Source: Macrostomum lignano (Eukaryota). From it: a DNA stretch of 64,000 bases. Shown here piece by piece: positions 5,200 to 63,453 of the stretch. Under the pieces are notes generated by a model. It did no database searches. It worked only from the letters and a program-made list of their open reading frames with translations, and was not told the DNA's origin. How positions within the stretch are numbered: the stretch's first letter is position 1; every line of letters begins with the position of its first letter. Location: positions 1-64,000 of the forward strand of contig NIVC01003412.1 in NCBI GenBank assembly GCA_002269645.1, given 5' to 3'. A program made the position numbers and the translations under genes.

Positions 5200-5272
<73 letters not shown>

Positions 5273-6482: not shown

Positions 6483-7465
<983 letters not shown>

Positions 7466-12067: not shown

Positions 12068-13852
12068 ATGGAAGGTTCATTTAGCGCAAGACTGTCTGAG
12101 AAGATGCGGTTCGCGGGATTCCACTCAGCGAATGCAAAAATTCAGTCGGCCATGGCGTCAGTGATTGAGGACACTCTGAGGTTTCTGGTCAAGACTGACA
12201 ATCTGCATCTGTTCGGCAGCTACTCTGACGGATGGGGCAGCTCGCTGACTCAGCTGGATGGAAGCGTGGAAGAAAGCAGCGACATTGACGTCACAATTGT
12301 TTCACTGTCAGTTCAGAGAAAATCGTTCCACCTCACTGGGGATTTGAAGAATGAGCATGGGCAGTGTCGCCACGACCACCTGCTCACACTATACTCTGAT
12401 GGCCACGCCGACATATCAAGCAGAGGTCAGTAGGTCCGGTGTCAGTTTTTACCACTGCACGAAAATGTGAAGTTTTCAATTAAAAACGTCTAGATTCCAA
12501 TTTTTCCGACCTAAGTAATTGCCTGAATAAAACGAATTCTCTTGGTTAAATTCTTGTAATAACATACTACCAAATCAACAGCCTCGGCACCAAATATTAT
12601 TCTGGGTGACCCAAACGTGAGCGTCTTCAGCGCTTTCGACATCATCGTCGCCCTGCCGTGCTGCGGATATCCGCCAATCGAGCTGCTGCTGCCGGTCTAC
12701 AAGAATCGCCGCGGTGGTGCCTCACGAATCCAGCCGCACATCCTGCAGATGCTCAGCGACGAGGTCAACAGCGAGACTCCGAGGTGTCACGTAGTCGTGG
12801 CGTCGCCTCCGAACGTCAGTCAAGGAACTCGCATGCGAGTGAGCACGACTCTGCTGGAGAGAGCTCTGCTCAGAAACCTCAACACGATTCAAGGCCAGTT
12901 CTTCCTCATCATTAAGTTTCTCATCAAGAAGGTCATCAGCGAGCGAGTCACCGGTCCGAAGACCTACATGGCCAAGAACCTGCTGTTCTACATGCTCGAC
13001 GAAACGCCCGAAGACGACTGGAAGCCGGAGAACTTGCTGACTCTCGTTCGCAAGTCGTTGCAGATGTTTGTCGAAATGATGCAGAGCTCAGACTCAGATG
13101 ATGTGTGCATGAAGCACTTCTTTCTTCGCGATGCAGCCGTGTACTTCAAGAAGGACCACCAGCCGAAATCAGAGATTATTCAAGAAGTCCAAGATGTCAT
13201 TCAGAGCCTGCTCAATGAGTTGACAGTGTTCATGGACTCGCTCTCAGAGGTCGCAGTGACTTCGGTGCAGTTCCACACCATCTTCGGTCTTCTCCTTCTG
13301 GTGGAGATGCACGAATCCAGTCATGATGAGGAGCAGGTCATGCGCGCCTTCCACACTGTGCTCGAAGCCCATGCGGCAGTGACCAAGCATTTCTCCGGCA
13401 AATCACCTGACGAGCATCTTGACGCTCTGCTGTCTCTGATTTCTCTCGTTCCCGACTGCACCAAGGTGTGCAGAGAGTGGCTGAGAGCGCTGGCTCATTT
13501 CAGGGTCGGCAAGTCGCTGGACGAGGCAGTCGAGCCGTTCGCCTATTCCATCAGTAGAGGCATCGCGTGCCCTCCGCTTGGACCCGAGTTGAGCTTTGAC
13601 GAGGCCAAGGCAGCCGTGCTGTGGATGCTGGCTGATCTGGAGCCCATGCGAGTCGAAGTTCAGAACGGCAAGATTGTCGGCTCCGCTCTTAAAGAGCAGT
13701 TTGCTATAATAGCCTCTCTTGTTGCCGCCCTGACTGACGGAGATGTGCCGGGCAGCGTTCTGGTATTTAGCGAGCTGCTCCGCAGCTCACCCGTGCTGCC
13801 TCTGATATTCAAGGACCGCGTGAGCATGACTGAAAGTTTTATGGTTGATTAG
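12068..13852 (+). CDS. cGAS-like receptor (Mab-21 family nucleotidyltransferase), 2 exons, 542 aa
   Basis: Exons 12068-12425 and 12582-13852, joined in frame by a phase-1 GTCAGT...CAG intron; GSYSDG...SDID motif, third Asp in FDIIVAL, Mab-21 C-lobe motifs RVSTTLLE and KTYMAKNLLFY. Confidence 0.88.
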
Positions 13853-15574
13853 GGCGATAAAAGCTAGTAATTATTACTCTTCTATTCCCTGAGAGCCGAG
13901 CAATTCTTTCAGAGAATTTTGATTGTTAGAGCAAATTTTTATATAGGTTTGTAAGAAACCTATAAACATATATTGTTAATAGGTTTTCGGTGGTTTGATA
14001 AAAACAACCCGCATATCCTTATTTCAGAAAACAAACCTGTCCGAGTACGGTGCGACGCTTCTGACGCAGCATCTGCGTAATGTCGTTGCTAGCGGTACGC
14101 TAGACTCTCGCGATGACGACGAGTCGAACTTCGAAGCTTCTGGTGATCACCATCGACCATTGGAAGAAGATGAACTTGACTGACTTTCGGGGGAGTTAAA
14201 AACTTATAAAAATTTACTGTTAAGGAAATTCAGTCCAGAAATTTCTCACTGGGCCTGAACGGACAAGCGCAGGTACATGAAATTCAAGAATACGGGCAAG
14301 CTTTTAGAATAAGAATCGCGTCGCCACCTCCGCAAAATGACGAGACATTCAACGATTCTGACAAAACGTCCATGTCTTCCTAAAAACGCTAACGCATCGG
14401 TGTTATCCATTGTGGTAATAATCCACATACTGAACGCCAATCAGCACTGCACCTCAGTACATTTTGCGATGCGTTAAAATTTTATCAGCCGTCAGCCACA
14501 TGTGTCTGCATCATCTCAGCCTATGGAATCTACTGGCCTTCAATTGGTGGCGCCAGCTGATTTTTTGAACTAGGTAGTGACTTTCTCCAATCTTGATCAA
14601 TAAGCCGTGGAAAGTACACTCGGCCAGTTGAAGTAACCAACTGTCTTCGAATAGTCACTGGTGGTGTGGCTATCCATGGTTACGTGACGTGGCTCCGTTC
14701 AGGTGCACCGTTATAAATGTCTGGGAATTGGAGCTGGAAATTGCCCCTTGGTACTAGAACTTACGGGAAAATATTCCCGTCATGAATACATACTCAATCA
14801 CTATGTTTATTCTGATATCAAGCTATTCGATTTAATGTAACATGCATCAAATATTATATTTATCTAACTTAAGCCGGTCGTTTTTTAAGTTACTGTCATG
14901 GATGGCATGGAGTTCTGATTCATGGTCTGTCGTTTTTATAAGATGAAGAACTTATGTATTTACTCAAGTAATAGACCGACCTCTGTATTATCGCACTATT
15001 ATACTTGGACATTTTGCCGTATGAAAATCTGTTTTTCTTTAATTTCTCTTAATAGTAGCTCGCCATACTCAATACACAAGCCGGGTGAAACACTCGTATT
15101 TACTGAAAAAGGGTTGGGCAAACGCGATGAAATGTTTTCTCGAACTTGCACTCAACTAGTGAAAGCGGAAAATTAGTTGAGGGACAATCTTATTAAAGCA
15201 AATAATCAGTTTAGAAGATGGCATACGTTCATTTTTTTACCGCGAGCTTCATTCATTCATTGCGAGCTTAATGATTGCATCTACCTGTAATTAAAGAAAT
15301 CAATCTACGCGATTCACTGAATAAACAACCATCTGTCAGATTTGTCTATCTGACACCATCGATATGGAAATAAAAGTCATTAAAATTATTTTCAGCTAAA
15401 ATACTAGTAATATTGCATAGTATCACTTTGCAATACTGAATACCGGCTACAGTGCTGAAACCCTTCGAAGGTTAGGAATCCTATAGGACGGCTATAGGAT
15501 TGCTAGAGAGAAAGTCATATTACAGATGCTAAAGTTCAAAAGCTAAGATTAGATGTAAAAACAGTGGCTAAAAA

Positions 15575-17205
15575 CCAGCTAGTCCGCGCTTCTTTCACCT
15601 CTTCGAATTTCCTGACGAAGTACTTGAAGAGGCGGGCGAAACTGTTCAGAATGAGGCTTGGAGGGTAGTGGACGAAACCACCGATGAGAGAGCTGGACTG
15701 TTCCCGGAGTTTATTGGTGTTCCCGGAGTGCATCTGGAGCCAGGAGTTCAAGGCGATAGCCCGCTTGATTACTTTGGCCAGTTTCTAACCGATGAGGCGA
15801 TCAACCTAATGGTTGAGTTTACCAATGCTTGAGCGTGGGAGAAGCTGAGAATACTTGAAGAAGATCAGGAAGAAGGAAATCAGCGATTGCCTCCGGCTCT
15901 TTCCGACTGGAAGGACTGCTCTGCCAACGAGATCAAGAAAGTTATAGCCATCATTTTCTACATGGGAATAGTGAAAAAGCCCGAAATCCAGAGCTATTGG
16001 GCTACCAGCAAGTTTCACGACAATCAATTTTTTCAAAGTGAGAACTGCTTATCTCGCAATCGTTTCCAGCAGATTCTGTCGTTTTTTTCGGTTTTATGAT
16101 TGCCGAACAGCTGATGCAGCTGACCCATTGCGCAAAATCCGGCCATTTTTGAGTTATGTACAGCAGATCTGCCAAAGAAAGTTTATGCCCGATAAAGACC
16201 TGGCCGTGGATGAAGAGCTAGTCCAGCACAAAGGCAGACTGGCTTTCAAGCAATACATCCCGACCAAACGGGCCAGGTATGGCATAAAAACCTACTGCCT
16301 ATGCGATTCAAAGACCGGCTACCTTTGGAATATTCTGGTGCATTCAACAACAGACGAAAACAACAAATCCGGGACCGAAATGGCTGCAAACCATCTCTCC
16401 ATCAGCGAGCGAATTGTGGTCGAGTTGTCAAAGAACTTGTTCAATCTCGGCTACCGAATTTTTATTGACAGCTATTTTTGCTCACACCGCCTTGCAAAGT
16501 TTCTGCTGGAGCACAACACCTTGGTGACTGGCACAATTCGCTGCAATCGTGGAATTCCACCTGAGCTCCAGCAGATGCAGATGCCAGCTCCATCGCATCG
16601 CTGCATGCGATTTGGCGATGTACTGGCTATCAAGGTTACGGACCGCAAAGCCAGTGGTGTGAAGACGCTGTACCTCATCGACTCGTTCGGTACAGCACGC
16701 AGTGTCCAGCGACAGAGAATTCGTCGAGGTGGTCAGGTGGACGTCGTCAGCAAGCCGGTTTCCGTCATAAACTATTCAAAGTGTATGGGAGGTGTCGATA
16801 GACTGGACTCTACACTTCAGCCCTACCACCCGAACAGGAAAATGTATCGCTGGCATCAGAAGCTGGGCATACACTCTGCTGCAGCTGGCGCACAACTCCT
16901 GGATTGTGTACCACCTGTCCGGAGGATCGAAGAAGTTTTTACCGTTCATGGAGAATTTGGTCGTCGCGCTGATTGACAGCTCAGGACCTGGGAAAAAGCG
17001 CTGCGTTCGCCCGTTGCCCGACGTTGGCGGAGCTGCGCACCTGCCCGGCAAGCTGCCCGCAACGCCTGGAAACCAGCGGCCCACGCGGCGCTGCCGAGTC
17101 TGCTACCGGAATGGCAGGACTAGGCGGACAGTCTTCATGTGTGAGCAATGCCCAGGTGAGCCCGGACTGTGCGTTCCCGGTTGCTTCCGAGAATGGCACA
17201 GCTAA
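15575..17205 (+). pseudogene. piggyBac transposase, disrupted (stop near 15830, frameshifts near 16090 and 16875)
   Basis: FIGVPG..PLDYFGQFLTDE, AVDEELV, FIDSYF, GGVDRLD (DDD triad), C-terminal CRVC...CEQC...LC...CF..WH. Confidence 0.88.
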
Positions 17206-18513: not shown

Positions 18514-21817
<3,304 letters not shown>

Positions 21818-22304
21818 ATCTTTTGGTAAATGAATTGTTGCTTGTCAAAAAAAGATTAAAAAACAAAAGCCTTCTAGCTTCTTTCAGCTCAAAATGTCTT
21901 CTTTTATTTTGAATACGAGCGCACTGAATATAAGTGTGCGCATGATAAATTCTCTTCTCACCTCAGGCAGAGTGAGCGAGTATTTATGCCAACAGCCAAA
22001 GACACGTGCACAGAAGTGAGAGCAAGTGCAGTGCAAGTACATCTGTACAGTAGACTTTTGCCTGCGAGCCTGATAGTAAAAAACGAAGTTCCCTTATTGT
22101 TGGTTTGGCCTAGAATTTCTCTAAGAAACTGCGAGGACAGAAGCCGCCACCAGTGCGTGTGAGAGATTAAGAGCTTTAGCTAAACGTTCGCTGTTTGTGG
22201 TTTTTTTAATCCTGAATTCTATTTAACTCTTTTCAGATCTCTAACTTTTTATCTTTTCAAAGATAAAACGTTTGCTGAGTTCTTCTCAGAAGTCTTCTTA
22301 CGAG

Positions 22305-22612
22305 GACATAATAATAATCATATTTGATTACACCTGCCCTAATAGGCAGATTTGCAACCGACAGCTCAGCCGCAGCTATTGCGCGGCGCATCTGAAAGCT
22401 GCGTACGGCTGTTCAGTCCAAAGACTGGGGGGGGGGTCGCCACAAACAATTACCTCAGCTAATGCTGGCACCCATTTTACAGCTGGGTGAACTGAAGCAA
22501 TGCAGAGTTAAGTGTCTTGCTCAAGGACACAAACTGTTTCGAGTGGGATCAGGAATCGAACCCCCGAACTTTAAGTCGTGAGCCCGACGCTCTAACCACT
22601 AGGCTACAACCG
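22305..22612 (-). mobile_element. SINE family 1, copy 3 (near full length)
   Basis: tRNA-like head GGTTGTAGCCTAGTGGTTAGAGCG...GGTTCGATTCC, CORE-like body, ATT-rich tail. Confidence 0.85.
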
Positions 22613-25078
22613 CCTTCTGGCATATGAGGGCATGCAAAGTCGTCAAACCGACAATATATGGAGCAATAGTTTATATCGTGCCAACAAGGTTTAATGAGAT
22701 CATTAAACAAATAAAATTTTCGCCGAAAAATTGCGAATTATTCGTAGAGGGAACGGTTCGATTAGTTGTTTATAACCGAGGACTTATCAGTGACTTGCTT
22801 CTGTACAAAATTACGAGTATTAGTATTCTTATATACAGAGAGGTAAAAATAACAAATAAAACAATGACGGGACACAATATAAAGATAAACGGCTTTCCGT
22901 GCCAAAAATTATTGAGATCATCAAACAAATAGGATTGCGCCAAAAAATTAAATGAACCAGTTGAAGTATCTTGCTGTTTAAACCAAAGAGTCAACTTCCT
23001 CAGTAGCTGAATTATTCTCAATAAGACACTTCTTGGGTACGCCTAAGCCTCTTTATAAAGAAAGGGGCAATAAAAAATGAAATAAACACGGCGCCGGAAA
23101 CAGCAATAGTGACGTAAAGATAGACGGATTTGCGGCCAAATATTGGTGATGGAGGACGATAAAATGCATTTAGACCAATCCAGGAAGTTGCTTGACTTAC
23201 TGGCGAAGTTGCTGGCGAAGCACTCAAAACAGTCAATGCTGAGCTGCATTTTACAAACTGCTTTTTAATACGAGCGCTCAGCTGGGGAAATTTTATCAGC
23301 ACCAGCATTGCTGTGTCACATTCGCTAAACTCAATCTCAGCGGTGTTTTTTTCGCGCAAAGAGAATCGAACTGAGGCGCACGGACCTGTCGGTCGGGTCG
23401 AAACTCTGCAATTAGTGCAATTGGAGACTGAAGAAAAACAAGACTGTAGAATTTCATCTGTAAGCTATTAACAACTGTCTAAATGCTTACAAAAACTCTT
23501 TCGCTTTTGGAACAGGCTTCAATCCACATTCACCGCTATCCTGTCTGATTAGAGACAGAACTGAGGCATCGGCTGCACTGTAGAACATGCCGAGACGCAC
23601 TGGCTGGCTCAGGTTCAGAGGCCGTCTGTACGGGTGCACCGACAGTCTGGCTGTATCTGAAACCGTTTTGATGCTCACCTCTATTTTAAAGTAGCTCCGG
23701 AGATTAAAATCAAAAACAGATGCTGAGAGTCGCTACTTACTTGCAGCAATCAGACTGCGGATCTCAGACATGCTGGAGAAGCTGGCCAGCTGCGCATCGC
23801 CTCTGATGCTGGACATTGCGGCTGTTAAATTGGCTTTGACTTTGCTCACAGCTTAGCAGTTTCCGTTGAAGCTGAGCATGTCTCTGTGGCAGAGTCCAGG
23901 GAGAATGAGCAGGAGTCTCAACTTTACCTTGGGGGCAGATTGGTATCTCGGGTCCCAGCTGGCCTGCACCGTGAGAGGCAGCCTGAAATAGAGTATTGGT
24001 ACAGCGCTGAAAGTCCTACATGTACCATATTACTGTCCGCATATGTAACTATAAACAGCGTTCAAACTCCTGAAGTAAAAACCATTCGAGCTACCTTTTG
24101 ACCACATAACAAGTTATTGAATCGCCATTCCTGGAGAAACAGCTGCTGGTAACCCCCTGAGAACCTCCCTGGATGGCGCCAACCCTCCGTCTAAAGCATT
24201 GTAGAGTTAGCAGCTTTACTATTGACAACTTTAACACGATCTGAGCTCGTAGCAACATTTCAAATTACAAATACTGATCGATTACTATATTGCCAGCGAC
24301 TTACATTAGCTGTTCAGGTGCGACCAAAAACATTCCTTGAGTCACATTGAGTGTCCCTCCTTTGTATCTGATGACCAAATCTATCTGTTGCTTTCTATCC
24401 TTTGTTTGCGAGTCCATCGTAAGTCCTTGCAGGACAAGCTGCAGGTCCTTTTCAGTCACTGAACTTTCGATGCTCCATGAGCAGCGTCCGCTGAGCTGCC
24501 TGATGTCTGTCTCTTCTGAGTAGCTTGCAGTGAGCTCAACGTGCTGTTTTTGATCATCGGAAATAATTATCGATGACATCAGCTTTGGGTAGACATTACA
24601 GTAACGGGTGGCGGCTTGGCAACTGAAAATGCAGGTTTGCAGTATATAAAGCGTTTTTATAGCTAAGTTTTTACATGCGAGCGTACGTATATTCTAGCAG
24701 TATAATCACAAAACAAAAACGACAGTGTAGTGATTTTACATATCTAAATGGTTGTAAGTATTTTAGGAGTAAATCTTAGGCCTAGTTTACTGGCAAGAAA
24801 ACTTCCGCTTGTAAAGATCTCCAAATATACATGTGGTAGACTACTAGAAGTAGTAGGATAAAATAATGAACAAAAAATTAACAATTTTTTTTGCATGCGT
24901 CAAACCTATTTTTAGTGGTACCGGTAATATCACGAAAACAGCGAGTGACTATTCTATTGTTCAAAAAACCGATTCTCAACATCTAGTTTTAGAACTACCA
25001 AAAGTAGTAAATGTTAACCTGAATGCTACCCAAGTCTCAACTTTTCTATTTCTTTCTTCCTTAATGAGGTCATTTATG

Positions 25079-26456: not shown

Positions 26457-29021
26457 CCCTTAGATGCTGGGTGGCTAGCAGAGCTGACCATAGCCATAGA
26501 ATAGAAGGTGACGAGAAAAAAAATTGGTAGTCTATGGCCAGTGAGGCGCAGAATTGCAGCTCCTTTCCTGCCGAACATGGTCAGCTGAGCTGACCATGGA
26601 ATAAATAGCGCACTCACTCAGTCTGTAGCACTCTGTAGCGACCACTAGAGCAACTTTCATGTACTAACAATGGCACAGAAGAAAGATGCAGTTTATTGTT
26701 GAATTAATTTCGAACTATAAAGTTAAAGGGAAAGTTAAGGTTAAAGTTCAAGCAAAAGAAGATATTTGTCCAAAAGCAACAAAAAATTTATGATTTTGAG
26801 ACGCAACTACATGTACGCTCGTATAGTAGCATATAATAATACAGGGAACAATATTGTGGTAGAGTGCCGCAGTTGGACATTTAATTATTTTTGTTTAATT
26901 AAGACAAAAATAATTAACAATATTTTTGTTTTAAAATACTAATATTTTATTATTTTACTATATTTTTACTATTTTGTCTTAAAACCTCTATATTAAAAAT
27001 AAAGGTAAAAAATTAATAGTCAATGCCGAATACAAACGCGAATTATATAGTACGGCTGGTGAAAGGAGTTCTTTAATTCAGTGATTCACATGCCACCGTT
27101 CAAAGCAGGGACTTGGGCACAGTCCAGGTGCATTCGGACACGCACTGCAGCAGAACACGGTGCGCTTCGCAGTGCCGTTGCGGTAGCACACGCGGCATCG
27201 CTTCACCGGCCTCGGGCACGATTCCCTCGGAGGCAGCTTTGATGGAAAGTGCTGCTGAGCTGCGGCCGCCGCTGGTTGCCTAGCTGCCGTTCGCTGTCTT
27301 CCTGGTCCCGTGGAGTCAACCAGTAGGGTGATGTACAGCTCTCCAGGAATTTGAAGAACTGCAGCCGGCCACCGTGCTTTGAGTATACAACCCATGCATT
27401 GTGTACAAGCAGCAGGCAGAGATGAAACCCCAACTTATGAAACCACTTGTAGGTTTTGCGGCAGCTGTCGTACGGTTTCAGCATGGCATCGAGTCGGTCA
27501 ACGCCTCCCATGCAGCGGTTGTACAGCAGGTTCGAGGCGCTTTTCTGCACTTGCACAGCTTCACCATTCTTGCGAATTCGGTTCGTCGCTACTTTCTGAG
27601 CTGAGCCGTGGGTGTCGATCATGAAGAATGTTTTCAAGCCGCTTTCCTTGCGCTCCAGAATTTTCATGGCCAGCACTGGCAGCTTCCTCATGAAAACTAC
27701 GTCATTCAACGGAACCTGCTGACTGCGCAATGCCAACGGCACTCCACGGTCGGCTCGAACAGTTGCTGTCAGCAGTGTGCTGCGTTCGTACAGAAAAGTC
27801 GCAAGCCGTACTGAAGCAAACCACTTGTCGACGAAAAGGTGATAGCCGAAACCGAGCAAGTCCTTGCAAAGGTGCACTACGATTTTCTCGCTTAGAGACA
27901 GCTGGTCACAACCGAGGTCGTCGCCAAAATGAGAGTTCTCTTCAGCAGTCGAATGTACTAGAAAGTTATACAGGTAGCCAGATGCAGACTCACAGGCGCA
28001 GTACATTTTAATTCCAACTCTGGCTCTCTTCGATGGGATGTACTGCCTAAGCTGAAGGCGCCCCTTGTACAGAATCAGGGACTCGTCGACGCTGACCTGC
28101 TGCTCCGGCTGGTACACGTTCGCGCAGAGCTGCTGAGCCAGACGGAGCAGCGGCCGAATCTTGTGCAGTGGGTCGTTCGAGGCGGGTGCTCGTGCATCGT
28201 AGAAACGAAGGAAGGCCAGCAGCTGCTTGAATCGGTCAAGGGTCAAGCCATTGGGCGATTGAAAAAACGGAGTACTGTGAATGACACTGGTGCTCCAGTA
28301 ATCATGCAGTTCCGGCTTCCGTGAGATGCCCATGAACAGGTACATACCCAACAGCTTGGATATCTCACTGCGGTTTGTGTCCTTCCATGACTTCAGCAAG
28401 CTCGAAACATCTTCTCCATCATGTGTCGCCTGCTCATACTCAGCCCAAGCTTTTGCGTTTGTCCACTCCACGATCTTATCCAGCAGCTCATCGGTTAGAA
28501 ACAGTCGTAGAAAATATTGGATGTCTTCACGGTCTTCGGGAAGGACAATGCTGGGGTTTACACCCGAAATTCCAGTGAAACTGGGGCCGTCTTCAACAAT
28601 GTCTTCGCCTGGCTCCACAAACTGCCAATCGTCTTCTACTTCGCTGATGGTGACCGACTTAGACGACTCGGAGTTCTCCGCTATTCCAGCGTCCCTTTCG
28701 GAGTCGGAAGTCAACAGAATATCCATATTTGGATTGATTTGAATTACATGAATAGAATTGTACAGAATTTGGCACAGCCCTTAATATACTAAAACTGGAC
28801 TGTCTATGGCCAGTCTTGTACAGTTTTGATAAGCGTGTGTGCAACCCATTCCAAATGTACATTCTCCTTCAACCCTAGATTAGACCAGCGATGGCTGGCT
28901 TATCGGCAGGAGTGGCAGTGCAATTCAGTTCACTGAAAACTTGAAATAGTCTATGGTCAGCTCTGCTGACCATGCCGGCAGGAACGGAGCTTTCTATTTA
29001 GGAATTCAGGCTTGAAAAGGT
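26457..29021 (-). mobile_element. piggyBac element 2, 2565 bp
   Basis: TTAA-CCCTT at 26453-61 and AAGGG-TTAA at 29017-25; internal inverted repeat about 26549-26600 / 28947-28990; transposase ORF inside. Confidence 0.9.
27078..28726 (-). pseudogene. piggyBac transposase, one frameshift near 27335 ahead of the Cys-rich C-terminus
   Basis: VSVDESL, FVDKWF, GGVDRLD; CRVC...CSAC...LC..PCF..WH in the second frame. A single indel could be an assembly error. Confidence 0.85.
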
Positions 29022-43000: not shown

Positions 43001-44154
43001 CAGTGAAATGGGCATGACTGTTTGCCTTCTTGAGTTGATCTCCATTACATTTTTTCTCAGTCTGAAAATTTTCAAGCACCAAAGGATCTCTCTATCTCAT
43101 TGACGAACATGGATTTTTGCGGTTGGACGCGAAACATCCCAGCAGTCACGGGAATTTCTCCTCCGCTGTAGCTGATGACCAACTTTGCTGATCCAGTTTG
43201 ATTCTCTCCCGATTGTAAGCGTAAGTCGGTGTTGTCGGCAGAACCAATGAGCAACCCCTGTAAGACAAGCTGCATGTCTTCTTGAGCAGCAGAATTCTTA
43301 ATTATCCACCTGCATCTCCTGTAGCTCGTATCCAACTCGTCGGTCAGCACTCTCGGAATGATGCTCTCGTCTCGGTGGAAAAAATCGTCAACTGTTATCA
43401 ATAATGTGAGCCCATTCACGCAGTAGTGGTTGGCGCCTTGGCAACTGGAAATGCGGCGAAAACGAAGACACTGACTGTAATAAACAGTGACACAAACTGG
43501 TGAACCGGTCAAAAATATTGACCAAATCATCGCTTTTCAAGGGCGGGTGCTAGAAATTAAGAAAATGGGTTTACTCGAGAAAGCTTGACTGCAACTGTTC
43601 GTACACTGCTGTCTGAGCGTTTGTGTAAAAAATAGCTGCTCCCATAGTCTTATAGTTATCAATGCTGGCAAGGGGGGCCGTAGCCCAGCGGTAGCGCAGC
43701 TGCTCTGGTGTGCCGCGACCCAGGCTCGATTCCAAGTGCAGCCACATTAATTTGGGGCTGGATTGGAATTTCGGCTTGGCTCGCCTGTGCAATTAACGGC
43801 CTTGAGAGCCAACCCCCCAAGAGGCAGTGAAATGTACATGCCTAAGAATTAATAAAGTTAGGGCCGCTGTACACTCCTGTGTGAGTGTGTGCCTGCGTAA
43901 CGTATCCGCGCGCTTGTATGCCTGCTCAGGGGAGTCGGCGAAATGGGCAGTAATGCCTCTCGCCGGTTGTGTGCCTATGTCGCCTAAAGTGCGCCAGGGT
44001 GCACACAATCCCCCTGCCTCTAATAAAAAATAAAAAAAATCAATGCTGGCACATCTAAAGTCAAGATTTAACGGATTAAAAGGCAAACTTACACTGATAC
44101 AGTCCGACAGAAAATCGTCACAGTTGCCAATGTCAGCAGGCTGACAGCACGCAT
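40075..44154 (-). CDS. Receptor copy D, 5 exons, about 840 aa, with a long (DEPP/DAPL)n cytoplasmic tail
   Basis: Exons 44154-44093, 43474-43109, 42338-42097, 42018-41853, 41761-40075; in frame (exon-2 donor GTTCGT is weak); TM LAVIVGVSCPILVVLVIITIVIIIVC followed by KRR. Confidence 0.78.
43671..44038 (+). mobile_element. tRNA-derived SINE family 2, full length with A-rich tail
   Basis: 13-bp TSD ATCAATGCTGGCA (43658-70, 44039-51); A-box TAGCCCAGCGG, B-box GGCTCGATTCC; absent from the homologous intron of copy A (about 21700). Confidence 0.9.
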
Positions 44155-44654
44155 ATCTTTTGATAATCAGATTGTACTTTGTCTAAAAACTAGAAAAAAC
44201 AAAAAGCCTTCAAGCTTCTTTCAGCTCAAAATGTCTTCTTTTATTTTGAATACGAGCGCACTGAATACAAGTGTACGCGTGATAAATTCTCTTCTCACCT
44301 CAGGCAGAGTGAGCGAGTTTACATTTATGCCAACACGTAAAGACACGCGCACAGAAGTGAGAGCAAGTGCAGTGCAAGTACATCTGTACAGTAGACTTTT
44401 GCCTACGTGCCTGATAATAACAAACGAAGTTCCCCTATTGTTGGTTTGGTTTAGAATTTCTCTAAGAAACTGCGAGGACAGAAGCCGCCACCAGTGATTG
44501 TGAGAGATAAAAGGGCTATTAGCTAAACGTTCGCTGTTTGTGGTTTTTTATAATCCTGAATTCTATTTAATTCGTTACAGATCTCTTTTAACTTTTTATC
44601 TTTTCAAAGATAAAACGTTTGCTGAGTTCTTCTCAGAAGTCTTCTTATGAGGAC

Positions 44655-44964
44655 ATAGTAATAACCATAATTGATTAAACCTACCCTAATGGGTAGATTT
44701 GCAACCGACAGCTCAGCCGCAGCTATTGCGCGGCGCATCTGAAGGCTTGCGTAGGGCGGCTGTTCACAGTTCAAGGACTGGGGGGTCGCCACACACACTC
44801 AATCACCCCAGCTAATACTGGCACCCATTTTACAGCTGGGTGAACTGAAGCAATGCAGAGTTAAGTGTTCTGCTCAAGGACACAAATTATTCCAGTGAGA
44901 TCGGGAATCAAAGCCCTGACCTTCGAGTCGTGAGTCCGACGCTCTAACGACTAGGCTACAACCC
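44655..44964 (-). mobile_element. SINE family 1, copy 5
   Basis: Same position and flanks as the 22305 copy, inside a duplicated block. Confidence 0.85.
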
Positions 44965-45379
44965 TCTTCTGGAATATGAGCGCATGCACAGTCCTCAAAA
45001 TGATAACAAAGAGCAATAGATTATATCGCGCCAACAAGGTTAAATGAGATTATTAAAAAAATTGATTTCGTCGAAAAATTACGATTTGTTCGTAAATTGA
45101 TCAGTTAAATTTGTAGCTTATAACCGAGGACTCATCAGTGACCTGTTCTTGAAATGATGGAGAATCCTCTTTGACGAGAACTTCGATGTTGAGTACGCTT
45201 TTATAGAATTACGAGTATTAGACCTTTTAAATTCGGAAAGAGACAAAAATATGAAATAAAAACGATGCCGGAACACAATATAAAGATAGACGGCTTTCGG
45301 TGCCAAGAATTAGTGAGATTCTTAAACAAATCCGAACTGTGAAATACTATCAAAACGCCCATTTTAAAACTGTGCAGAT

Positions 45380-46749: not shown

Positions 46750-48520
46750 CACGTCGGCACCAATGCTCTTCATGGTGCAGCCGAAGGTGAGCAAAAGTTT
46801 AAAAAACTTGCTTATGCACCCGCGTGTGATGCAGTTCGCAGGCAGGTAGTGCTACTAATTGTAATTGTGCACGGAGGTGGTCAACAAACCGAGCTGCCGC
46901 ACGAGGCTGGATTATGAAGCTGGGTGTCAGGGCTGTAAACTCGGCTTCCATCTTCATAAATGCAACAAGCGCCACCGGCGAGGGCACAGTCAACCCGCGG
47001 GATGCATGCGAGTAGGTCTTGTGCTGGATGTGAACCCCCGCAGGTGTGGAAGCAAATTGTTGCGCAGATGACAGTGAAGAACTCGGCTTCGCTTTAGCAC
47101 ATATCCGCCAACGTACTCAGCAGCTTCCAGCGAGGCATTGCTTGCATCCTGCCAGGAGTCCAGCTTTTCTTGGAGCAGCTGCTGCTGTGGTACCTGGCAT
47201 GCAACACTGCTTGAGTTCGGTGGACCCGCTTTGGTAGTCACACAGTCTCCGGCACCGGTGGGGGCGTAGGCTGCTGTGATGCCAGCATCACAGTTGTCGT
47301 CTTCGCAGTTGCGGGACGTCGAGTCAGGCTGGGCCAGGCCGCTGGCAGCCACGGACCGCAGGGCACCGACAAAGGAGCTGAGCTCTGGTCTGTCGTTAAA
47401 ACAGTTGTGCCCGCGGATAATGCAGAAAAATTCTGAAGAGGAGAATTGTGCGATGCCCTTTGTTTCATCGATGCAAATTCATGCAACGATCTAAATCCCG
47501 GCCTTGTGGCTAGCTGTCAGGCACTCATCAATAGCTATTCCAAATCCTTCTTGGCCAAGAGTTCGAAAACAGGATAATATGCGATTGCTTGTTTCCAGTC
47601 CTGAAAGACTCATCGAAGCACAGCGACGATGGCCTCGTTTACAGGTCTGGGCAACTGCTCCTTGCTGTCATCAGGGGTTCGTGGATCGCAGCCCACAACC
47701 ATGTCACGATGTTGCTGGTAGCGCAGGCTGGGTGTAAGGCTCATTCCATCGAAGCAAAGGGTAGCAATCCGCTGCTGATTGGTCGATGATGCATCAAACT
47801 TGGACTGCAAGGATCGCATCGTCAAGTTGCAAATCCCAGGCAATACGAAATACTGTCGAATTCGCCACCTAATTGTCGACCTTGATGGTAGCGGGATTTT
47901 CCACTTATTGCGTAAGCTGACGAGCCTTTTTGATGCAGCTGAATTGAGCACGCAATGTCTGCTTTGGTCCAGCGCATGCCGCGGCTGCAAACATCACGCC
48001 TGAACTTCTGCTGCATCAGACGACTAGCTATTGAGCTGCTTAGCATGACCTTGTTTAGCATGACCTTGGTTGGTTAAGCTGTTGGCTGTTGGCATTGCCT
48101 GCTCTTCGGCCTGTGGTGGCTCACCATCAGTGCTGTTGAATGGCTGCAGTTCAGGTGGATAGAGATTGTCAGCCTCTTCGTCACTGCAAACAACCAAATG
48201 TGTCAGGTCATGTGCAATGAGGCGGGGTAGAGTCAGCTCCCTGTCTAGAAAGGCATTCCACCGTAAACGTGCGGTATCTTCATGTCGCAGAGAAGGACAG
48301 CTGTAATCATTGTCAGTAAAATGCACATTGCACACTCGCAATCCCATCTTGCGAATGGCTCCGATGTCCAAGTCGATTTCCAGCATTTGCCTCCATCGAT
48401 TCGCAACTCCGTCGTCCGCTGGAAACCTGTGCATTCGCACAGCCACTCCCTCGTCTGTTAGAGATTGCGCTGTATGGGTGCAGGTAGCTGCACACAGCAG
48501 CGCTTTGAGCTGAATTTCAT
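46750..48520 (-). mobile_element. THAP-domain P-element/THAP9-like transposase remnant, internally deleted and frameshifted
   Basis: HRFP...W...RVCNVHF...LRWNA THAP motif; LPSRSTIR...LCFDGMSL; IRGHNCFNDRP...FVGALR...NCEDD; EYVGGYV. TIR pair not found. Confidence 0.8.
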
Positions 48521-49223: not shown

Positions 49224-51568
49224 TCAATAGACCGTGCTTTGTGGAAGACTGCATGGGGTCGCCAACATTCTCCTTCGATATGGCATCTGGAGATCATCTT
49301 GTTCATCATCAGATGAAGCAGCAGCCAATAATGGCGTTACGTTATGGCTTTCGCTGGCGCTGTTTTTCGACAATTTTTTCTTTCTTTTAAAGACGATTAT
49401 TCCCAGTACTAAAACAAAAATTAGAGGGAGAATCACAATCCCTAGAGTGATACCAACGTTCAATGAATCGCTTTCAAGTGTTTTTGCTGAGCGGCTCTTG
49501 GGTGAGTTCCAGCCTTGAATAGTTTTATGCGTGAGCACTTTTGCGGTACTCGGGTAGCACAGGTGATTCAGTTCTCTAAAAATCGCATTTCTGGAGATCA
49601 TCTTTGTTTCTTGATCGCAATTTCTGATCACCGCTCTCTCAGGAAACATAATAAGAATCGGAAATGGTCTTCTGCATTCGCTGAAATCAAAGATTGATCT
49701 CTCCGATGCGTCTACTCTAAGAACAGAGCACGGGCCTGCGATTCGACGTGGCTCGCTAAAAATCGAAATAGTAAAATTTATTTACGAGGTATTGTCCTAG
49801 CACTCAACTTTAACCAGAGCAATGTGGTAACACTTACAACTCTCTGAAACTCGATATTTGCTGAAGTTTGATGTAGTTTTTAAAATCTCCGTCCATACTG
49901 ACTATGGAAAGCACTGAGACGTCAGTCCTCTTGTAGAACATTCCGAGACGCACTGGCTGAGTCAAGTTCAGAGGCCGTCTGTACGGATGCGCAGACAGTC
50001 TGGCTGTGTCTAAAACCGTTTTGATGCTCATTTTTATAATAAAGTAGCCACGAAGATGAAAATTTAAAACAGATGTTGAAAGTTGCTACTTACTTGCAGC
50101 TATCAGACTGCGGATCTCAGACATGCTGGAGAAGCTGGCCAGCTGAGCATCGCCTCTGATGCTGGACATTGCGGCTGTCACATTGGCTCGGAGTTCGCTC
50201 AAAGCGTAGCAGTTTCTGTTGAAGCTGAGCATGTCTCTGTGGCAGAGTCCAGGGAGAATGAGCAGGAGTCTCAGCTTTACCTGGGCGGCACGTTGATACC
50301 TCGGGTCCCAGCTTGCCTCCACCGTGAGCGGGAACCTAAAATAGCAATTCAAAGCATGATATCAAATGGGCATGACTGTTTGCCTTCTTGAGTTGATCTC
50401 CATTACATTTTTTCTCAGTTTGAAAATTTTCAAGCACCAAAGGATCTCTCTATCTCATTGACGAACATGGATTTTTGCGGTTGGACGCGAAACATCCCAG
50501 CAGTCACGGGAATTTCTCCTCCGCTGTAGCTGATGACCAACTTTGCTGATCCAGTTTGATTCTCTCCCGATTGTAAGCGTAAGTCGGTGTTGTCGGCAGA
50601 ACCGATGAGCAACCCCTGTAGGACAAGCTGCATGTCTTCTTGAGCAGCAGAATTCTTAATGATCCACCTGCATCTCCTGTAGCTCGTATCCAACTCGTCC
50701 GTCAGCACTCTCGGAATGATGCTCTCGTCTCGGTGGAAGAAATCGTCAACTGTTATCAGCATTGTGAGCCCATTCACGCAGTAGTGGTTGGCGCCTCGGC
50801 AACTGGAAATGCGGCGAAAACGAAGACACTGACTGTAATAAACAGTGACACAAACTGGTGAACCGGTCAAAAATATTGACCAAATCATCGCCTTTCGGGC
50901 AGGTGCTAGAAATTGGGAAAATGATTTTACTCAAGAAAGCTTGACTGCAACTGTTCGTACAATGCTGTCTGAGCGTTTGTGTAAAAATACATTTATATGT
51001 TTCATATAGCTATAGCTGCTACATTCACCCGTGTTTCATCGAACGCACAGTGCACCGATACAGTATAGCGGTATATCAAGACGCAGTTTCTATTGACACT
51101 AACACTGTATTCTGAGGGCCTTAGATTCTGTGGAAAAATTCCTGTCAGGGACTACTTAGTCCTTGGGTAAGAGCTTAGGCGATTATTACTGTGATGCTTA
51201 ATTCTTATTGGCTAGGAAACATTAAAAATGCGACAAGGGGCAGGGCTGCGGACAAAAATGGGGATAGAGCAGGGGGGGGGGCAGCCAATCACTCTTAAGC
51301 GCGCAAAACAGAGGGAGAAAGAATGGGGGAGTGCAGGCAGATAGAGGGAGGGGGTCCACGAAGACGGCTGGGAGAGGAGGTTGGCGCAAACACTGGCCGA
51401 AGGGGGGGAAAGAGTGGAATTCACGGCCCGTGTGACCAAGTGCTCGAGACTGCGTATCAATGGAATTGTACAGGCACAAAACTGTGTATAAAATTCTTAC
51501 CCAGGGCTCGTCAGCACCTGGAGCAGCACAAACACTGCTGTCAAAGTCGGAAGTGGTAAATTTAGCAT
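49224..51568 (-). CDS. Receptor copy E, 5 exons, about 459 aa
   Basis: Exons 51568-51501, 50832-50467, 50335-50094, 50009-49838, 49755-49224; in frame; signal MLNLPLPTLTAVFVLLQVLTSP; TM VGITLGIVILPLIFVLVLGIIVF followed by KRKKK. Confidence 0.8.
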
Positions 51569-56469: not shown

Positions 56470-59035
56470 CCCCTACTCAAAGACAGTACCCCTACTTAAA
56501 GGCAGTTACACCTACTCTAAGACGGTACGCTACTCTGAGATAGTACCCTACTCTAAGACAGTACCCTACTCAAAGACAATACCCTACTCAAAGACAGTAC
56601 CCTACTCAAAGACCATACCCTACTCAAAGACAGTACCCTACTCAAAGACAGTACCCTACTCTAAGACAGTTATCCCTTCTCTAAGACAGTACCCTACTCA
56701 AAGACAGTGCCCTACTCTAAGCTAGTACCTTACTCCAAGACAGTACCCTACTCTAAGACAGTACCATACTCAAAGACAGTACCCTACTCTAAGACAGTAC
56801 CCTACTCAAAGACAGTACCCTACTCAAAGACAGTACCCTACTCTAAGACAGTACCCTACTCTAAGACAGTGCCCTACTCTGAGCCAGTACCTTACTCCAA
56901 GACAGTACCCTACTCTAAGACTGTACCCTACTCTAAGACAGTGCCCTACTCTGAGCCAGTACCTTACTCCAAGTCAGTACCCTACTCTAAGACAGTACCC
57001 TACTCAAAGACAATTAACTCTACTCATAAGGCAGTACCCTACTCAAAGACAGTACCCTACTCAAAGACAGAACCCTACTCAAAAACAGTACCCTACTCAA
57101 AAACAGTACCCTACTCAAAGACAGTTATCCCTTCTCTAAGCCAGTATCCTACTCAAAGACAGTACCCTACTCTAAGACAGTACCCTACTCTAAGACAGTA
57201 CCCTACTCTAAGACAGTACCCTACTCAAAGACAGTACCCTACCCAAAGACAGTACCTACTCAAAGACAGTACCCTACTCAAAGACAGTACCTACTCAAAG
57301 ACAGTACCCTACTCAAAAGCCAGTACCCTACTCAAAGACAGTTATCCCTTCTCTAAGCCAGTACCCTACTCAAAGACAGTTATCCCTTCTCTAAGCCAGT
57401 ACCCTACTCTAAGACAGTACCCTACTCTAAGACAGTACCCTACTCTAAGACAGTACCCTACTCAAAGACAGTTATCTCTACTCAAAAGACAGTACCCTAC
57501 TCAAAGACAGTTATCTCTACTCAAAAGACAGTACCCTACTCAAAGACAGTACCCTACTCAAAGACCATACCCTACTCAAAGACAGTACCCTACTCAAAGA
57601 CAGTACCCTACTCTAAGACAGTTATCCCTTCTCTAAGACAGTACCCTACTCAAAGACAGTGCCCTACTCTAAGCTAGTACCTTACTCCAAGACAGTACCC
57701 TACTCTAAGACAGTACCTTACTCAAAGACAGTACCCTACTCTAAGACAGTACCCTACTCAAAGACAGTACCCTACTCTAAGACTGTACCCTACTCTAAGA
57801 CAGTACCCTACTCAAAGACAGTTATCTCTACTCAAAAGACAGTACCCTACTCAAAGACAGTACCCTACTCAAAGACAGAACCCTACTCAAAAACAGTACC
57901 CTACTCAAAGACAGAACCCTACTCAAAAACAGAACCCTACTCAAAGACAGTACCCTACTCAAAGACAGTTATCCCTTCTCTAAGCCAGTATCCTACTCAA
58001 AGACAGTACCCTACTCAAAGACAGAACCCTACTCAAAAACAGTACCCTACTCAAAAACAGAACCCTACTCAAAAACAGAACCCTACTCAAAGACAGTACC
58101 CTACTCAAAGACAGTTATCCCTTCTCTAAGCCAGTATCCTACTCAAAGACAGTACCCTACTCAAAGACAGTACCCTACTCTAAGACAGTACCCTACTCTA
58201 AGACAGTACCCTACTCAAAGACAGTACCCTACCCAAAGACAGTACCTACTCAAAGACAGTACCCTACTCAAAGACAGTACCTACTCAAAGACAGTACCCT
58301 ACTCAAAAGCCAGTACCCTACTCAAAGACAGTTATCCCTTCTCTAAGCCAGTACCCTACTCAAAGACAGTTATCCCTTCTCTAAGCCAGTACCCTACTCA
58401 AAGACAGTTATCCCTTCTCTAAGCCAGTACCCTACTCTAAGACAGTACCCTACTCAAAGACAGTTATCCCTTCTCTAAGACAGTACCCTACTCAAAGACA
58501 GTGCCCTACTCTAAGCTAGTACCTTACTCCAAGACAGTACCCTACTCTAAGACAGTACCTTACTCAAAGACAGTACCCTACTCTAAGACTGTACCCTACT
58601 CTAAGACAGTGCCCTACTCTGAGCCAGTACCTTACTCCAAGACAGTACCCTACTCTAAGACAGTACCCTACTCTAAGACAGTACCCTACTCAAAGACAGT
58701 TATCTCTACTCAAAAGACAGTACCCTACTCAAAGACAGTACCCTACTCAAAGACAGAACCCTACTCAAAAACAGTACCCTACTTAAAAACAGAACCCTAC
58801 TCAAAAACAGAACCCTACTCAAAGACAGTACCCTACTCAAAGACAGTTATCCCTTCTCTAAGCCAGTACCCTACTCAAAGACAGTTATCCCTTCTCTAAG
58901 CCAGTACCCTACTCAAAGACAGTTATCCCTTCTCTAAGCCAGTACCCTACTCAAAGACAGTTATCCCTTCTCTAAGCCAGTACCCTACTCAAAGACAGTT
59001 ATCCCTTCTCTAAGCCAGTACCCTACTCTAAGACA
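56470..59035 (+). repeat. 18-bp minisatellite (GACAGTACCCTACTCAAA)n with higher-order blocks
   Basis: Diagnostic variant GTGCCCTACTCTAAGCTAGTACCTTACTCC recurs at 56707, 57659, 58501. Confidence 0.95.
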
Positions 59036-59994
59036 GCAGCATTCTACTCAAACGCAAAGATTATTTTGATTTCTATTCGAAACAAAACATTTTTTAAGGA
59101 TAGTACATACTTTGAAGTATATCTGATATTGTGCTGAGCAAACCGTTATTTTTTTCTGCGAATGACTAGCAATTGAATTCAAATATTGTCACAATTGTTA
59201 CGTCGAAATAACATAAAACGTCTTAAAACTTTCCTCAAAACAAAAGTATCATTTTCCATACAGTGGCCCTTTTAACATTAATCAATTGCTTGCCATCATT
59301 ACTGTTATATAGCTAGATTATAAATCTAGTATTACATGTCGTATAGAAGTCCTTGATCGTAACTTTCGCAGACAGATAAGGTTTCCCAGACAGTTCTGTG
59401 AGCCATTCAAAAAATCACATCATTTGAACTTCTTACACTATAGAAATAATGATGAAGACGCACTTTTTCCCAAATCCCGCGCTAGCACATGGGCTCTAAA
59501 CTTACTTGCCTACTAACAGTGGGCAATGGGCATTTTTATCCTTTTTCTGCGAATTTTCATAGAATCTATACTAGATATAATGTCTGGTCATACTAGTAGT
59601 CATAATAACATAGGCGCAGCTTTTTGGGTCATAAATCATCGCTTTCAAAGTTGGTCTGACAGCCACCTGCGCCTCACTCAGTGTTGAAGCGGGCGCCAGA
59701 TGGTCTGAGAGGATGCGGGCGGTAGCTTTTTTCTCATCATTTTGACAGGCCATCAAGATTTATGAGGCCAGAGCCTATTGTTCGTGTTCACTCAAGCGTG
59801 TGACAGCTTTGACAGCTATGCGTTTTACCCCTAAAAGTACCTTGGGATTAGCGATTAGCAATTTCTCTTCATTATCTTTCACTTTCTATTTAATAAGAGC
59901 TTTCTAATGTATATTTTCTCATTAATTTCTGTCAATCCTACGCGAAAAGTCATAAATCATTTTGTTGCGATTTTGAGTGATTTATGGCCGCACC

Positions 59995-61345: not shown

Positions 61346-61635
61346 GGAGTGGGGGGCCAGGTCTCTAATTGATTTATTTCTGAGCCTGAGGCCCGAAGGC
61401 TTCCCTAACAAGGGCCCGAAGGTCGAAACCCATCAATAAGAGTACTAGCAAAACACAAAATTCAAGCAAATGAATTCATTTTGGCTTGGAACCGTTACTG
61501 TGTTTTTAGCTAATGATTAGTATGATGTTTGGTAACTATTATGAGTGATTTATATTACATGGATGGCAAGCGTGGATGCAATATTACGAGTAGAAGCAAA
61601 CGTGATTGTTGACAGACCAGATATTCAATAATTAG

Positions 61636-63453
61636 CTATTGGAAACAATTTAAGTTATCCTCTCCGCTCTCATTGGGTTCGAAACCGGTGCTCTCCGTCC
61701 GATTCTGTGCCGAAGTCTGTCGAACGCCATTGAAGTTCGTTGTTTCTGGTGTTTCTAGCAAACTGTAAAACGTGTCGTCCATGCTGTCCATCCGATTCGG
61801 ACAATGCCTAGAAGGCGATTGACTTTCCATGCCATCTTGCCCTAAACTGTAATACTTATCTGAATCGAGGCTGGTCATTCTGTTAAACTTTGGATTAAAA
61901 GTCTCGTCAGGTTGTGCATCTGCTGTGAAATTCTGTGGATTTTCAGGTGTAAAATCAGGTGATTCTTCAGGTATTTCGTTGGTTAGGCCACCAGAAGGAA
62001 TCGAGTTCCGTGACAGACAACTGTAATACTTGTCTGAAAACCAGCTGACGTTTGGGGTGTGGTACTCTGAATCCAAGCTGTCCGCCCGATTTTGAGCGAA
62101 TCTTTGACCCAGTTCGGTGCCAGGTGTCGCATCGGGTGGTGCATCAGGTTGTGCGTCAGGTGGTGCGTCAGGTGGTGCATCAGGTGGTGCATCAGGTGGT
62201 GCATCAACTGTCCCACCAGAAGTAGTCACATCGGGTTCCAGACTGTGCTGATCGGCTAAAGACGAGCTAAAGTTTGGGTTTTTTGGAGTGCCAGCAGCAG
62301 CATCGACTTTATCACTTTCTGAAGCGTCTGCTGGATTCCTAGGTTTTGGTTCAATTAAAGGTTGTGAAACACTGCTCAGTTTAACATCTTCTTTCTCCAC
62401 AGACGGCTCAGAACTATTTAATGAGCACAACCGTCTTTTGTAGACAATAAACACCACAATGGTTGCAATAAGTACCAGCAGAATCGGACAGGAAACTCCA
62501 AAAATGATGGTCAACTTGCTTGCTGGAGCTTCAGTTGAGGACCAGTCTCGTATTGGTTGAGTCGTTGCTGTTGGTGATATTCTAATACCGGTAATTAGAT
62601 CAGAAGAATCTCTAGCTACAACACTAGGAGCATCAGTATATGCAATGAAATGCATCTTAGTTGTCTGCTTCTGTTGCAGAGCTTCGATAACTTTCCAAGG
62701 GACCGCCCTCGCGCTACAGCTGTCTGCATAATTGTATCCTGCCGTGCCTCCTCTCTCAGGAAACTTTACAAGAAATGGAATCTGGCTGCTACAGCTTTTC
62801 GATTTGATTTCCGCTCTGTCTGAAGAATCCACATTCATAGTCACGCACGGACCTGTCGCGGCGTCTGAATCTCTGCAGTTATTTAAAGGTGGTTCCTGAT
62901 TTACTCTCAGCTTATTTTTCATAGCCTCTTCCGTTTTACAGAGATGAAACGGAATTACTCACACAAATTTCTCAGATCCGAGAACCGGCTTCAATCCACA
63001 TTCTCCGCTATCATTTCTGATTAGAGAGAGCACTGAGGCATCGGCTGCACTGTAGAACATGCCGAGACGCACTGGCTGGCTCAGGCTCAGAGGCCGTCTG
63101 TACGGATGCACCGACAGTCTGGCTGTGTCTGAAAGCGGTTTTGATGCTCATTTTTATAATAAAGCAGACACGGAGAATGAAATTTAAAACAGATGTTGAA
63201 AGGCCACTCACTTGCAGCAATGAGATTGCGGATCTCAGACATGCTGGAGAAGCTGGCCAGCTGAGCATCGCCTCCGATGCTGGACATTGCGGCTGTCAAA
63301 TTGGCTTTGACTTTGCTCACAGCGTACCAGTTTCCGTTGAAGCTGAGCATGTCTCTGTGGCAGAGTCCAGGGAGAATCAGCAGGAGTTTGAGCTTTACCT
63401 GGGCGGCACGTTGATACCTCGGATCCCAGCTGGCCTCCACAGTAAGCGGCAGC
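61636..63453 (-). CDS. Receptor copy F, exons 3-5 (5' exons not found in the window)
   Basis: Exons 63453-63212, 63128-62963, 62872-61636 in frame; TM LTIIFGVSCPILLVLIATIVVFIVY followed by KRR; the lectin motif reads GNWY instead of GNCY. Confidence 0.8.

Follow-up and report, generated by a model that had tools for sequence, protein, structure and literature searches.

A 64-kb stretch of the genome of the flatworm Macrostomum lignano (contig NIVC01003412.1, positions 1 to 64,000, assembly GCA_002269645.1; hereafter the window) contains two genes of the Mab-21/cGAS-like type, here called cGLR1 and cGLR2 after the cGAS-like receptors (cGLRs), and six paralogues of a receptor gene, here called copies A to F. 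Our results are best explained by two unrelated, lineage-expanded families that lie side by side in a transposon-rich segment with fast turnover, where their proximity is incidental and does not reflect functional coupling. We assign this reading a probability of roughly 0.68. A preliminary description of the window, made from its letters, had proposed an innate-immune supercluster in a birth-and-death locus. The supercluster idea is not supported by our results; the birth-and-death turnover is.

Self-BLASTN, tblastn and Pfam confirmed the two Mab-21/cGAS-like genes and the six receptor paralogues at the places given in the preliminary description, and the ankyrin-bearing cGLR2 indeed lies between copies B and C on the same strand. 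The cGLRs had also been described as interleaved with the receptor array. This holds for cGLR2, which sits inside the array between B and C, but not for cGLR1, which lies outside it, on the other strand, in convergent orientation to copy A. Beyond the transposons, only the cGLRs and the receptor family are recognisable as genes, as had been claimed: the remainder is transposon or satellite, and Rfam and tRNA scans of the window found no RNA genes. Some of the eight units are no longer intact as genes or as enzymes.

The evidence for incidental proximity comes in part from the other cGLR loci of M. lignano. We sampled 11 of these, which amount to 296.6 kb with 10 kb taken on both sides of each gene. 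Nine carry ankyrin-type relatives of cGLR2, and the two others carry the closest relatives of cGLR1. Queries from the receptor family (n = 15) gave no match at any of the 11 loci, compared to 121 matches in the window. Hence, seen from the cGLR side and within flanks of ±10 kb, we did not find the recurrent co-localisation that would characterise a functionally linked immune cluster.

A public gene model, P0021 (UniRef A0A1I8GKI3), might be taken for a second case in which a cGLR adjoins a receptor. It is a chimera of the C-terminus of an ankyrin-cGLR, exon 1 of copy B, and exon 3 of copy B read out of frame. Because it contains exon 3 of copy B, in the wrong frame, P0021 is the counterpart of the present locus, and we rejected it as a second case. 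The linkage therefore has no independent recurrence. P0021 has a Tyr codon where copy B of the window (23018-24000) has TAA. The functional pairing of surface and cytosolic sensors suggested in the preliminary description is not supported by these results, nor by the observation discussed below that cGLR2 belongs to a dispersed module. The fallback offered in the same description, an incidental linkage produced by local duplication, is the better reading.

A functional supercluster held together by selection, in which surface receptors with a C-type lectin-like domain (CTLD) and cytosolic cGLRs share their regulation or a common pathway, is in our judgement quite improbable. The two cGLR subtypes and six receptor copies do lie within a span of at most 52 kb, cGLR2 and all six receptor copies are on the minus strand with cGLR1 alone on the plus strand, and the counterpart locus represented by P0021 retains the order of cGLR2 followed by copy B. 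Moreover, cGLRs are established pattern-recognition receptors, some of them with ankyrin repeats (Li et al., 2023; PMC9980059). Yet P0021 is not an independent case, no receptor exon accompanies the 11 other cGLR loci, and cGLR2 is a repeat-like module of which this copy is apparently defective. As for the receptors themselves, half of the copies are damaged, their ectodomain core is under purifying selection, and they have neither the EPN/QPD and WND motifs of sugar-binding lectins nor a recognisable signalling domain.

Several points weigh against our preferred reading. The sample is small (n = 11 loci, ±10 kb, from the cGLR side only), and a looser linkage over tens of kilobases is possible. 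Two different cGLR subtypes lie within 25 kb of one array, which exceeds what one chance insertion would bring. The lesions that we call in the genes (a stop, a Cys-to-Trp and a Ser-to-Asn change) are substitutions from one assembly and could be assembly errors or allelic variants. Finally, P0001 (locus L007), the closest relative of cGLR1, also adjoins lectin genes, which speaks for a supercluster too, although these genes are of the canonical Lectin_C type and of an unrelated family. At this locus (L007 1-9500, on contig NIVC01001984.1), several canonical Pfam Lectin_C exons are found 0.5-9 kb upstream of P0001. These canonical CTLD exons gave no match to the window, and the lectin genes of L007 therefore belong to a different family. 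Hence, L007 is a second, but different, case of lectin genes beside a cGLR.

A bolder version of the linkage would hold that cytosolic sensing was rebuilt in this lineage from dozens of ankyrin-cGLRs, which are truly co-organised here with receptors of CUB and CTLD-like domains in a region resembling the natural killer (NK) complex, and that the messenger is read by a receptor other than STING. We regard this as very improbable.

An incidental placement is also suggested by the repetitive nature of cGLR2. The ~8 kb from 30176 to 38174 recur at at least eight other M. lignano loci with 80-90% nucleotide identity (BLASTN). Both the intron and ~1 kb of 5' flank belong to the recurring segment, the flank with a 31-bp tandem repeat. 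The loci agree on where the segment ends; alignments to L001, L002, L005, L009 and L010 reach as far as 38095-38174. In all, the ankyrin-cGLR module is shared among the window and the loci L001-L006 and L009-L011. At the protein level, more than 20 ankyrin-Mab21 proteins of M. lignano share 75-84% identity with cGLR2, and the module family comprises at least 40 protein clusters in the genome. Judged by these sequence comparisons, cGLR2 represents one of many dispersed copies of a gene module of ~8 kb. Possibly, the module spread by segmental duplication or by transposon-mediated capture.

This particular copy is probably decaying, or at best N-terminally short and possibly inactive, as several features of its sequence suggest. 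Its ankyrin exon is readily recognised (Pfam Ank_2, E = 2e-21), and its catalytic motif reads MTGN-X20-DIDW-X57-QDT, in which the Ser of the GS pair is replaced by Asn. The motif was found in more than 35 paralogues, all of which have (M/I/L)TGS-[YF][AS][DE]GW; MTGN occurs in the window copy alone. The ankyrin repeat units measure 98-103 bp in the window (36797-37449) versus exactly 99 bp at L003, L009 and L011, so that successive units fall out of frame. These frame shifts are either real decay or indel noise of the assembly. In addition, the intron of cGLR2 contains a fragment of a Gypsy-type integrase (32635-34105), an insertion that is missing from the paralogous loci (BLASTN).

In contrast to cGLR2, cGLR1 is intact. 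This separate, stand-alone cGLR borders the array and has a nearly complete catalytic motif. Its GT/AG splice preserves the reading frame. The intron that follows the 'DGH/KGH' strand of cGLR2 matches the intron of cGLR1 in position and phase, and the two genes are therefore paralogues. The nearest relative of cGLR1 is P0001 with 50% identity. The motif reads LFGS-X20-DIDV-X62-FDI, where all catalytic residues and spacings fit the motif of Li et al., for which we used h[QT]GS X8-20 [DE]h[DE]h X50-90 h[DE]h, and F replaces [QT]. Residues S51, D72, D74 and D139 are invariant across the alignment of the cGLR1-type family. Taken strictly, the regular expression of Li et al. fits 20 of 55 M. lignano relatives, but not cGLR1 or cGLR2.

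Three lines of evidence (predicted fold, profile search and catalytic motif) agree that the genes are cGLRs, as the preliminary description had stated. The fold prediction, which among the window cGLRs covers cGLR1, gave an AlphaFold2 model with a pLDDT of 81.6 and a pTM of 0.87. Its best Foldseek matches in the PDB were cGAS (4k9b, E = 4.8e-7, template modelling (TM) score on the target 0.54), MAB21L1, Cv-cGLR1 (8gjw, 2.1e-6) and MB21D2 (7lt1), with an alignment that extends over ~390 columns. A profile of the nucleotidyltransferase (NTase)/Mab-21 family searched against 177,635 PDB sequences retrieved cGAS-like receptor 1 (8gjy, E = 1.4e-4) and cGAS (2e-4 to 3e-3), and nothing else. This search was run after trimming, because a first family profile included ankyrin columns and its matches were swamped by ankyrin proteins. 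Pfam Mab-21_C matched the window cGLRs just below the gathering score (E = 5e-5 for cGLR2 and 8e-4). We predict that cGLR1 is an active, ligand-gated nucleotidyltransferase, which would make a nucleotide second messenger once a ligand binds its cGAS-like cage.

Both cGLRs carry a helical extension of ~200 amino acids past the Mab-21 C-terminal domain. In cGLR1 it covers residues ~340-542 (~13250-13852), and it is modelled with a pLDDT of 75-93 over much of its length. It has a weak Pfam match of the TPR_IPO5-like type and no counterpart in cGAS.

The fold of the window family is shared with MAB21L1/L2, which were matched by Foldseek at E ~1e-6, similar to cGAS. Mab21L proteins are highly conserved and single-copy. 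In contrast, the window family has diverged and has expanded enormously, and its profile found cGAS and cGLR1 among the PDB sequences but not MAB21L1. A further difference is that Mab21L proteins have no predicted functional active site according to Li et al. (PMC9980059), while the catalytic residues are retained in the window family. With the cGLRs of Li et al., the window genes share the caged NTase core followed by the Mab-21 C-terminal helix bundle, the GS...DxD...D catalytic residues, apart from the Ser in cGLR2, and a lineage-specific expansion; the AlphaFold2 fold of cGLR1 fits cGAS and Cv-cGLR1, and cGLR2 has an N-terminal ankyrin fusion. They differ in the F for [QT] before GS in cGLR1, in GN for GS in cGLR2, and in the C-terminal extension of both.

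The cGLR family assignment is sound but not new, because Li et al. list the same M. lignano family. These authors reported that, Mab21-like proteins aside, cGLRs are absent from most platyhelminths, while their screen list includes at least three, and probably five, M. lignano proteins, which they cloned (PMC9980059). Two of these that we compared belong to the same family as the window cGLRs. They also described fusions of ankyrin repeats to cGLRs, from Stylophora pistillata, and listed the M. lignano expansion in their supplementary tables without discussing it (PMC9980059). Hence, the window cGLRs are further members of a family already catalogued in M. lignano. Our literature search for studies dedicated to cGAS or cGLRs of Macrostomum found none, and only these supplementary tables.

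The receptor family is far less familiar. Its exon junctions are defined by two M. lignano proteins, P0016 and P0017. The protein consists of a signal peptide, a β-rich domain of ~110 amino acids (exon 0), a second domain of ~145 amino acids (exons 1-3), a Ser/Thr-rich stalk, a transmembrane helix and a cytoplasmic tail. The receptors are putative surface binding proteins. Pfam searches with single exons and with the spliced ectodomain detected no Lectin_C, CUB or recognisable signalling domain. An exhaustive profile search yielded 34 matching proteins in 1.84 billion representatives and no relatives outside macrostomid flatworms, and the family is therefore lineage-restricted. M. lignano is the source of every protein relative of both the receptor and the cGLR family, which by sequence alone would make the window an unannotated haplotype or homeologue of M. 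lignano, or a part of the genome of a sibling species. The receptor family appears to be undescribed, but its domain type is known and is present here in a divergent form.

The term 'lectin-like' used in the preliminary description is only partly appropriate. A 12-member profile of the second domain matched CD69 (E = 3.2e-4) and DC-SIGN/DC-SIGNR (2e-3) in the PDB. Of the 38 PDB matches at E ≤ 10, 35 are CTLDs, all in register, with coverage of only the N-terminal ~55 residues. This remote homology stands, but the sugar-binding motifs EPN/QPD and WND are absent from the receptor alignments. Describing the receptors as remote, degenerate relatives of CTLDs is justified by these sequence matches; there is no basis for calling them sugar-binding lectins. 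An EPN-like stretch, 'LRVNLEPPLNN', was kept in a first splice model of the receptor, which we rejected on the evidence of P0016 and P0017, where the stretch is spliced out. Because it is intronic, 'LEPPLNN' is not a sugar-binding motif of the protein.

Compared to CTLD receptors such as CD69/KLR and DC-SIGN, the window family has the N-terminal half in register (C..W/M..F..CY...A....G..LA), the long-form N-terminal Cys pair together with the inner Cys pair, and an organisation in tandem arrays with pseudogenes. Within the family, the outer Cys pair (C2, C13) does not vary, and neither does one inner Cys (C134). In contrast to those receptors, the proteins are of type I rather than type II, and a CUB-like domain precedes the CTLD-like domain. 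The disulfide between C1 and C4 is lost in most members, and the WIGL motif is degenerate (VRLGM). The window family also has no EPN/QPD or WND motifs, escapes detection by Pfam Lectin_C and yielded no relatives beyond macrostomids. The AlphaFold2 model of P0016, built from eight sequences, has a pLDDT of 40 overall and below 35 over the CTLD part.

The N-terminal domain of this model (pLDDT 50-77, ~60) gave its best Foldseek matches with CUB domains, at a TM-score on the target of ~0.45-0.48. The matches are neuropilin (a1 domain), the spermadhesin aSFP, C1r and MASP, with which the model shares its β-rich character, and UniProt labels some members of the receptor family 'CUB domain-containing'. 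It differs from these CUB ectodomains in that neither Pfam nor the PDB sequences support the likeness; the profile of this domain had no match in the latter. A weak case can thus be made from the model that the N-terminal domain may be CUB-like.

This bears on an alternative explanation, in which the receptors would be non-immune, fast-evolving surface proteins of adhesion or reproduction (e.g. in gamete or epidermal recognition) and the cGLRs unrelated neighbours. CUB/spermadhesin-like and CTLD-like modules are also typical of adhesion and reproduction proteins, and the modelled resemblance to CUB domains, including that of aSFP, and the UniProt names would fit such a role. The family is restricted to the macrostomid lineage, and its highly variable, low-complexity tails stand next to a conserved ectodomain core; Macrostomum reproductive genes are known to evolve fast. 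However, the CUB assignment depends on a model of such pLDDT, for which the sequence-profile search found nothing, and the best sequence matches are NK-receptor-type CTLDs such as CD69, which are also compatible with an immune role. We consider a non-immune function unlikely.

The array itself bears out the birth-and-death locus of the preliminary description, through its pseudogenes, mosaic copies and many transposon insertions. Self-BLASTN and tblastn identified six receptor units, of which about three are apparently intact (A, D and E) and three damaged (B, C and F). Copy A is the most divergent of the six, with open reading frames and an (ATAG)n satellite in an intron. Copy D is intact: its spliced reading frame is open, and it is 94% identical to P0016 with the same exon junctions. 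The open reading frames of copy E are intact as well. Copy B is probably a pseudogene, because its exon 1 holds an in-frame stop (TAC to TAA, 'GNC*AVSK'). Copy C is a fragment that lacks exon 0 and the transmembrane segment. Copy F has Trp in place of a family-invariant Cys; its exon 3 region is identical to P0017 over the stretch compared, with a few residue differences elsewhere.

Copies D and E are mosaic, since their exons 0 are nearly identical and their exons 3 strongly diverged. A 626-bp block that includes exon 0 (43006-43631 in D, 50364-50987 in E) has 96.8% nucleotide identity, and the exon 0 proteins are 98.6% identical, in contrast to only ~27% protein identity for exon 3. The likeness of exon 0 suggests recent gene conversion or exon-level duplication.

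Pairwise ratios of nonsynonymous to synonymous substitution rates (dN/dS) over the exon 1-2 core ranged from 0.23 to 0.43, which indicates purifying rather than diversifying selection on the conserved core, and we rejected positive selection on the ectodomain core on this ground. Instead, the variability is located in the distal part of the CTLD, the stalk and the tail. The cytoplasmic tail is wholly different between copies, with (DEPP)n in D, a short tail in B and E, and a Tyr-containing tail in F. In copy D, a 24-bp coding tandem repeat present 26.6 times (40473-41111) encodes a long, acidic, proline-rich (DEPP/DAPL)n stretch. The tail of copy F has a short (DAPP)n version and three YxxL-like motifs (KYYSCL, KYYSLG and FYSLL).

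The array and its lesions might also be assembly artefacts, if haplotypes of a polyploid genome were collapsed or joined into chimeras, or if long reads introduced indel errors. The M. lignano genome is highly duplicated, and the ankyrin units of variable length, compared to the uniform 99 bp elsewhere, resemble indel noise. Yet the receptor copies are 10-30% apart, and they differ in exon 3 sequence as well as in transposon insertions. Furthermore, the key lesions are substitutions rather than indels, and the independent protein models P0016, P0017 and P0021 reproduce copies D, F and B, respectively, together with the order of cGLR2 and copy B. An artefactual origin of the array is therefore hardly credible.

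On our preferred reading of two unrelated families, the receptors would form a tandem array that encodes a type-I membrane protein restricted to macrostomids. Unequal crossing-over and gene conversion would account for the growth and decay of the array, and the surrounding repeats may help its unequal recombination. A copy of the cGLR2 module would have landed inside this array and would be decaying there. The proximity of cGLRs and receptors would then follow from the duplication-prone genomic context.

The window as a whole is eukaryotic in character, with spliced genes, many microsatellites and satellites, and both DNA and LTR (long terminal repeat) transposons. Transposon-derived coding matter detected by Pfam comprises a Tc1-like DDE_3 element, two piggyBac copies (DDE_Tnp_1_7, E-values of 8e-70 and 3e-47), a Gypsy-type integrase and a THAP/P-element-like element. 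The coordinates of genes and transposon remnants are given in Table 1.

Table 1. Genes, gene remnants and transposon-derived features of the window (exon limits in window coordinates).
Feature	Position	Strand	Structure and remarks
cGLR1	12068-13852	+	Exon 1 12068-12425, exon 2 12582-13852; GT/AG phase-1 intron; 542 aa
Second piggyBac copy	16038-17205	+	Between cGLR1 and copy A; Pfam DDE_Tnp_1_7
Receptor copy A	~21358-18560	-	Exon 0 21358-21065, exon 1 19600-19357, exon 2 19170-19040, exon 3 18890-18560 (approximate); tblastn, frame translations
Receptor copy B	24645-23018	-	Exon 0 ~24645-24304, exon 1 23982-23741, exon 2 23656-23490, exon 3 ~23390-23018
piggyBac-type transposase	27203-28726	-	Between cGLR2 and copy B; Pfam DDE_Tnp_1_7
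cGLR2	37087-30100	-	Ankyrin exon open reading frame 37087-36191; NTase N-terminal exon ~35600-35220; C-terminal exon 31631-30100
Gypsy-type LTR-retrotransposon integrase/RNase H fragment	32635-34105	-	In cGLR2 intron; Pfam Integrase_H2C2 + rve
Upstream part of ankyrin-cGLR module	37088-38174	-	Out-of-frame ankyrin units 98-103 bp, 31-bp tandem repeat 37674-37790, conserved 5' flank (three-frame translation, Tandem Repeats Finder)
Receptor copy C	39692-38800	-	Remnants of exons 1-3; several in-frame stops; internal repeat insertion
Receptor copy D	43530-40075	-	Exon 0 43530-43109, exon 1 42338-42097, exon 2 42018-41853, exon 3 41761-40075
THAP/P-element-like transposase remnant	46990-48446	-	Between copies D and E; Pfam THAP + TNP-like_RNaseH_N
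Receptor copy E	50888-49224	-	Exon 0 50888-50467, exon 1 50335-50094, exon 2 50009-49836, exon 3 49755-49224
Receptor copy F	63453-61636	-	Exon 1 63453-63212, exon 2 63128-62963, exon 3 62872-61636; exon 0 not within window

Simple satellites occupy 19876-21041, 56471-59036, 38295-38702, 143-972, 5193-6000 and 6567-7104. The (ATAG)n satellite, located by Tandem Repeats Finder within the first intron of copy A, is 1.17 kb long. An 18-bp satellite covers 2.6 kb, a 42-bp repeat is present in 9.7 copies, and the first 7 kb of the window are made up mostly of several GA-rich arrays. A non-coding repeat of 1.2-1.3 kb occurs upstream of copies A/B (21701-22930) and of copy D (44039-45331) with 83.6% identity. 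Shorter related pieces lie at 3303-4411, and the element probably represents an interspersed repeat of an unclassified kind.

A functional linkage would make the window a rare invertebrate case of surface and cytosolic pattern-recognition genes in one complex, in a phylum thought to be without cGAS-STING, but the evidence points the other way. Flatworms have generally been reported to be without cGAS-STING (PMC4117786, PMC13563047), and loss of STING has been reported in Schistosoma and Schmidtea. This raises a question for flatworms at large, and not specifically for this window, as to what reads the product of the cGLRs if STING is absent. A useful result that remains is that the ankyrin-cGLR expansion of M. 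lignano is documented as a dispersed gene module of ~8 kb. In addition, macrostomids have a private family of membrane proteins with CUB-like and CTLD-like domains, which evolves by birth and death.

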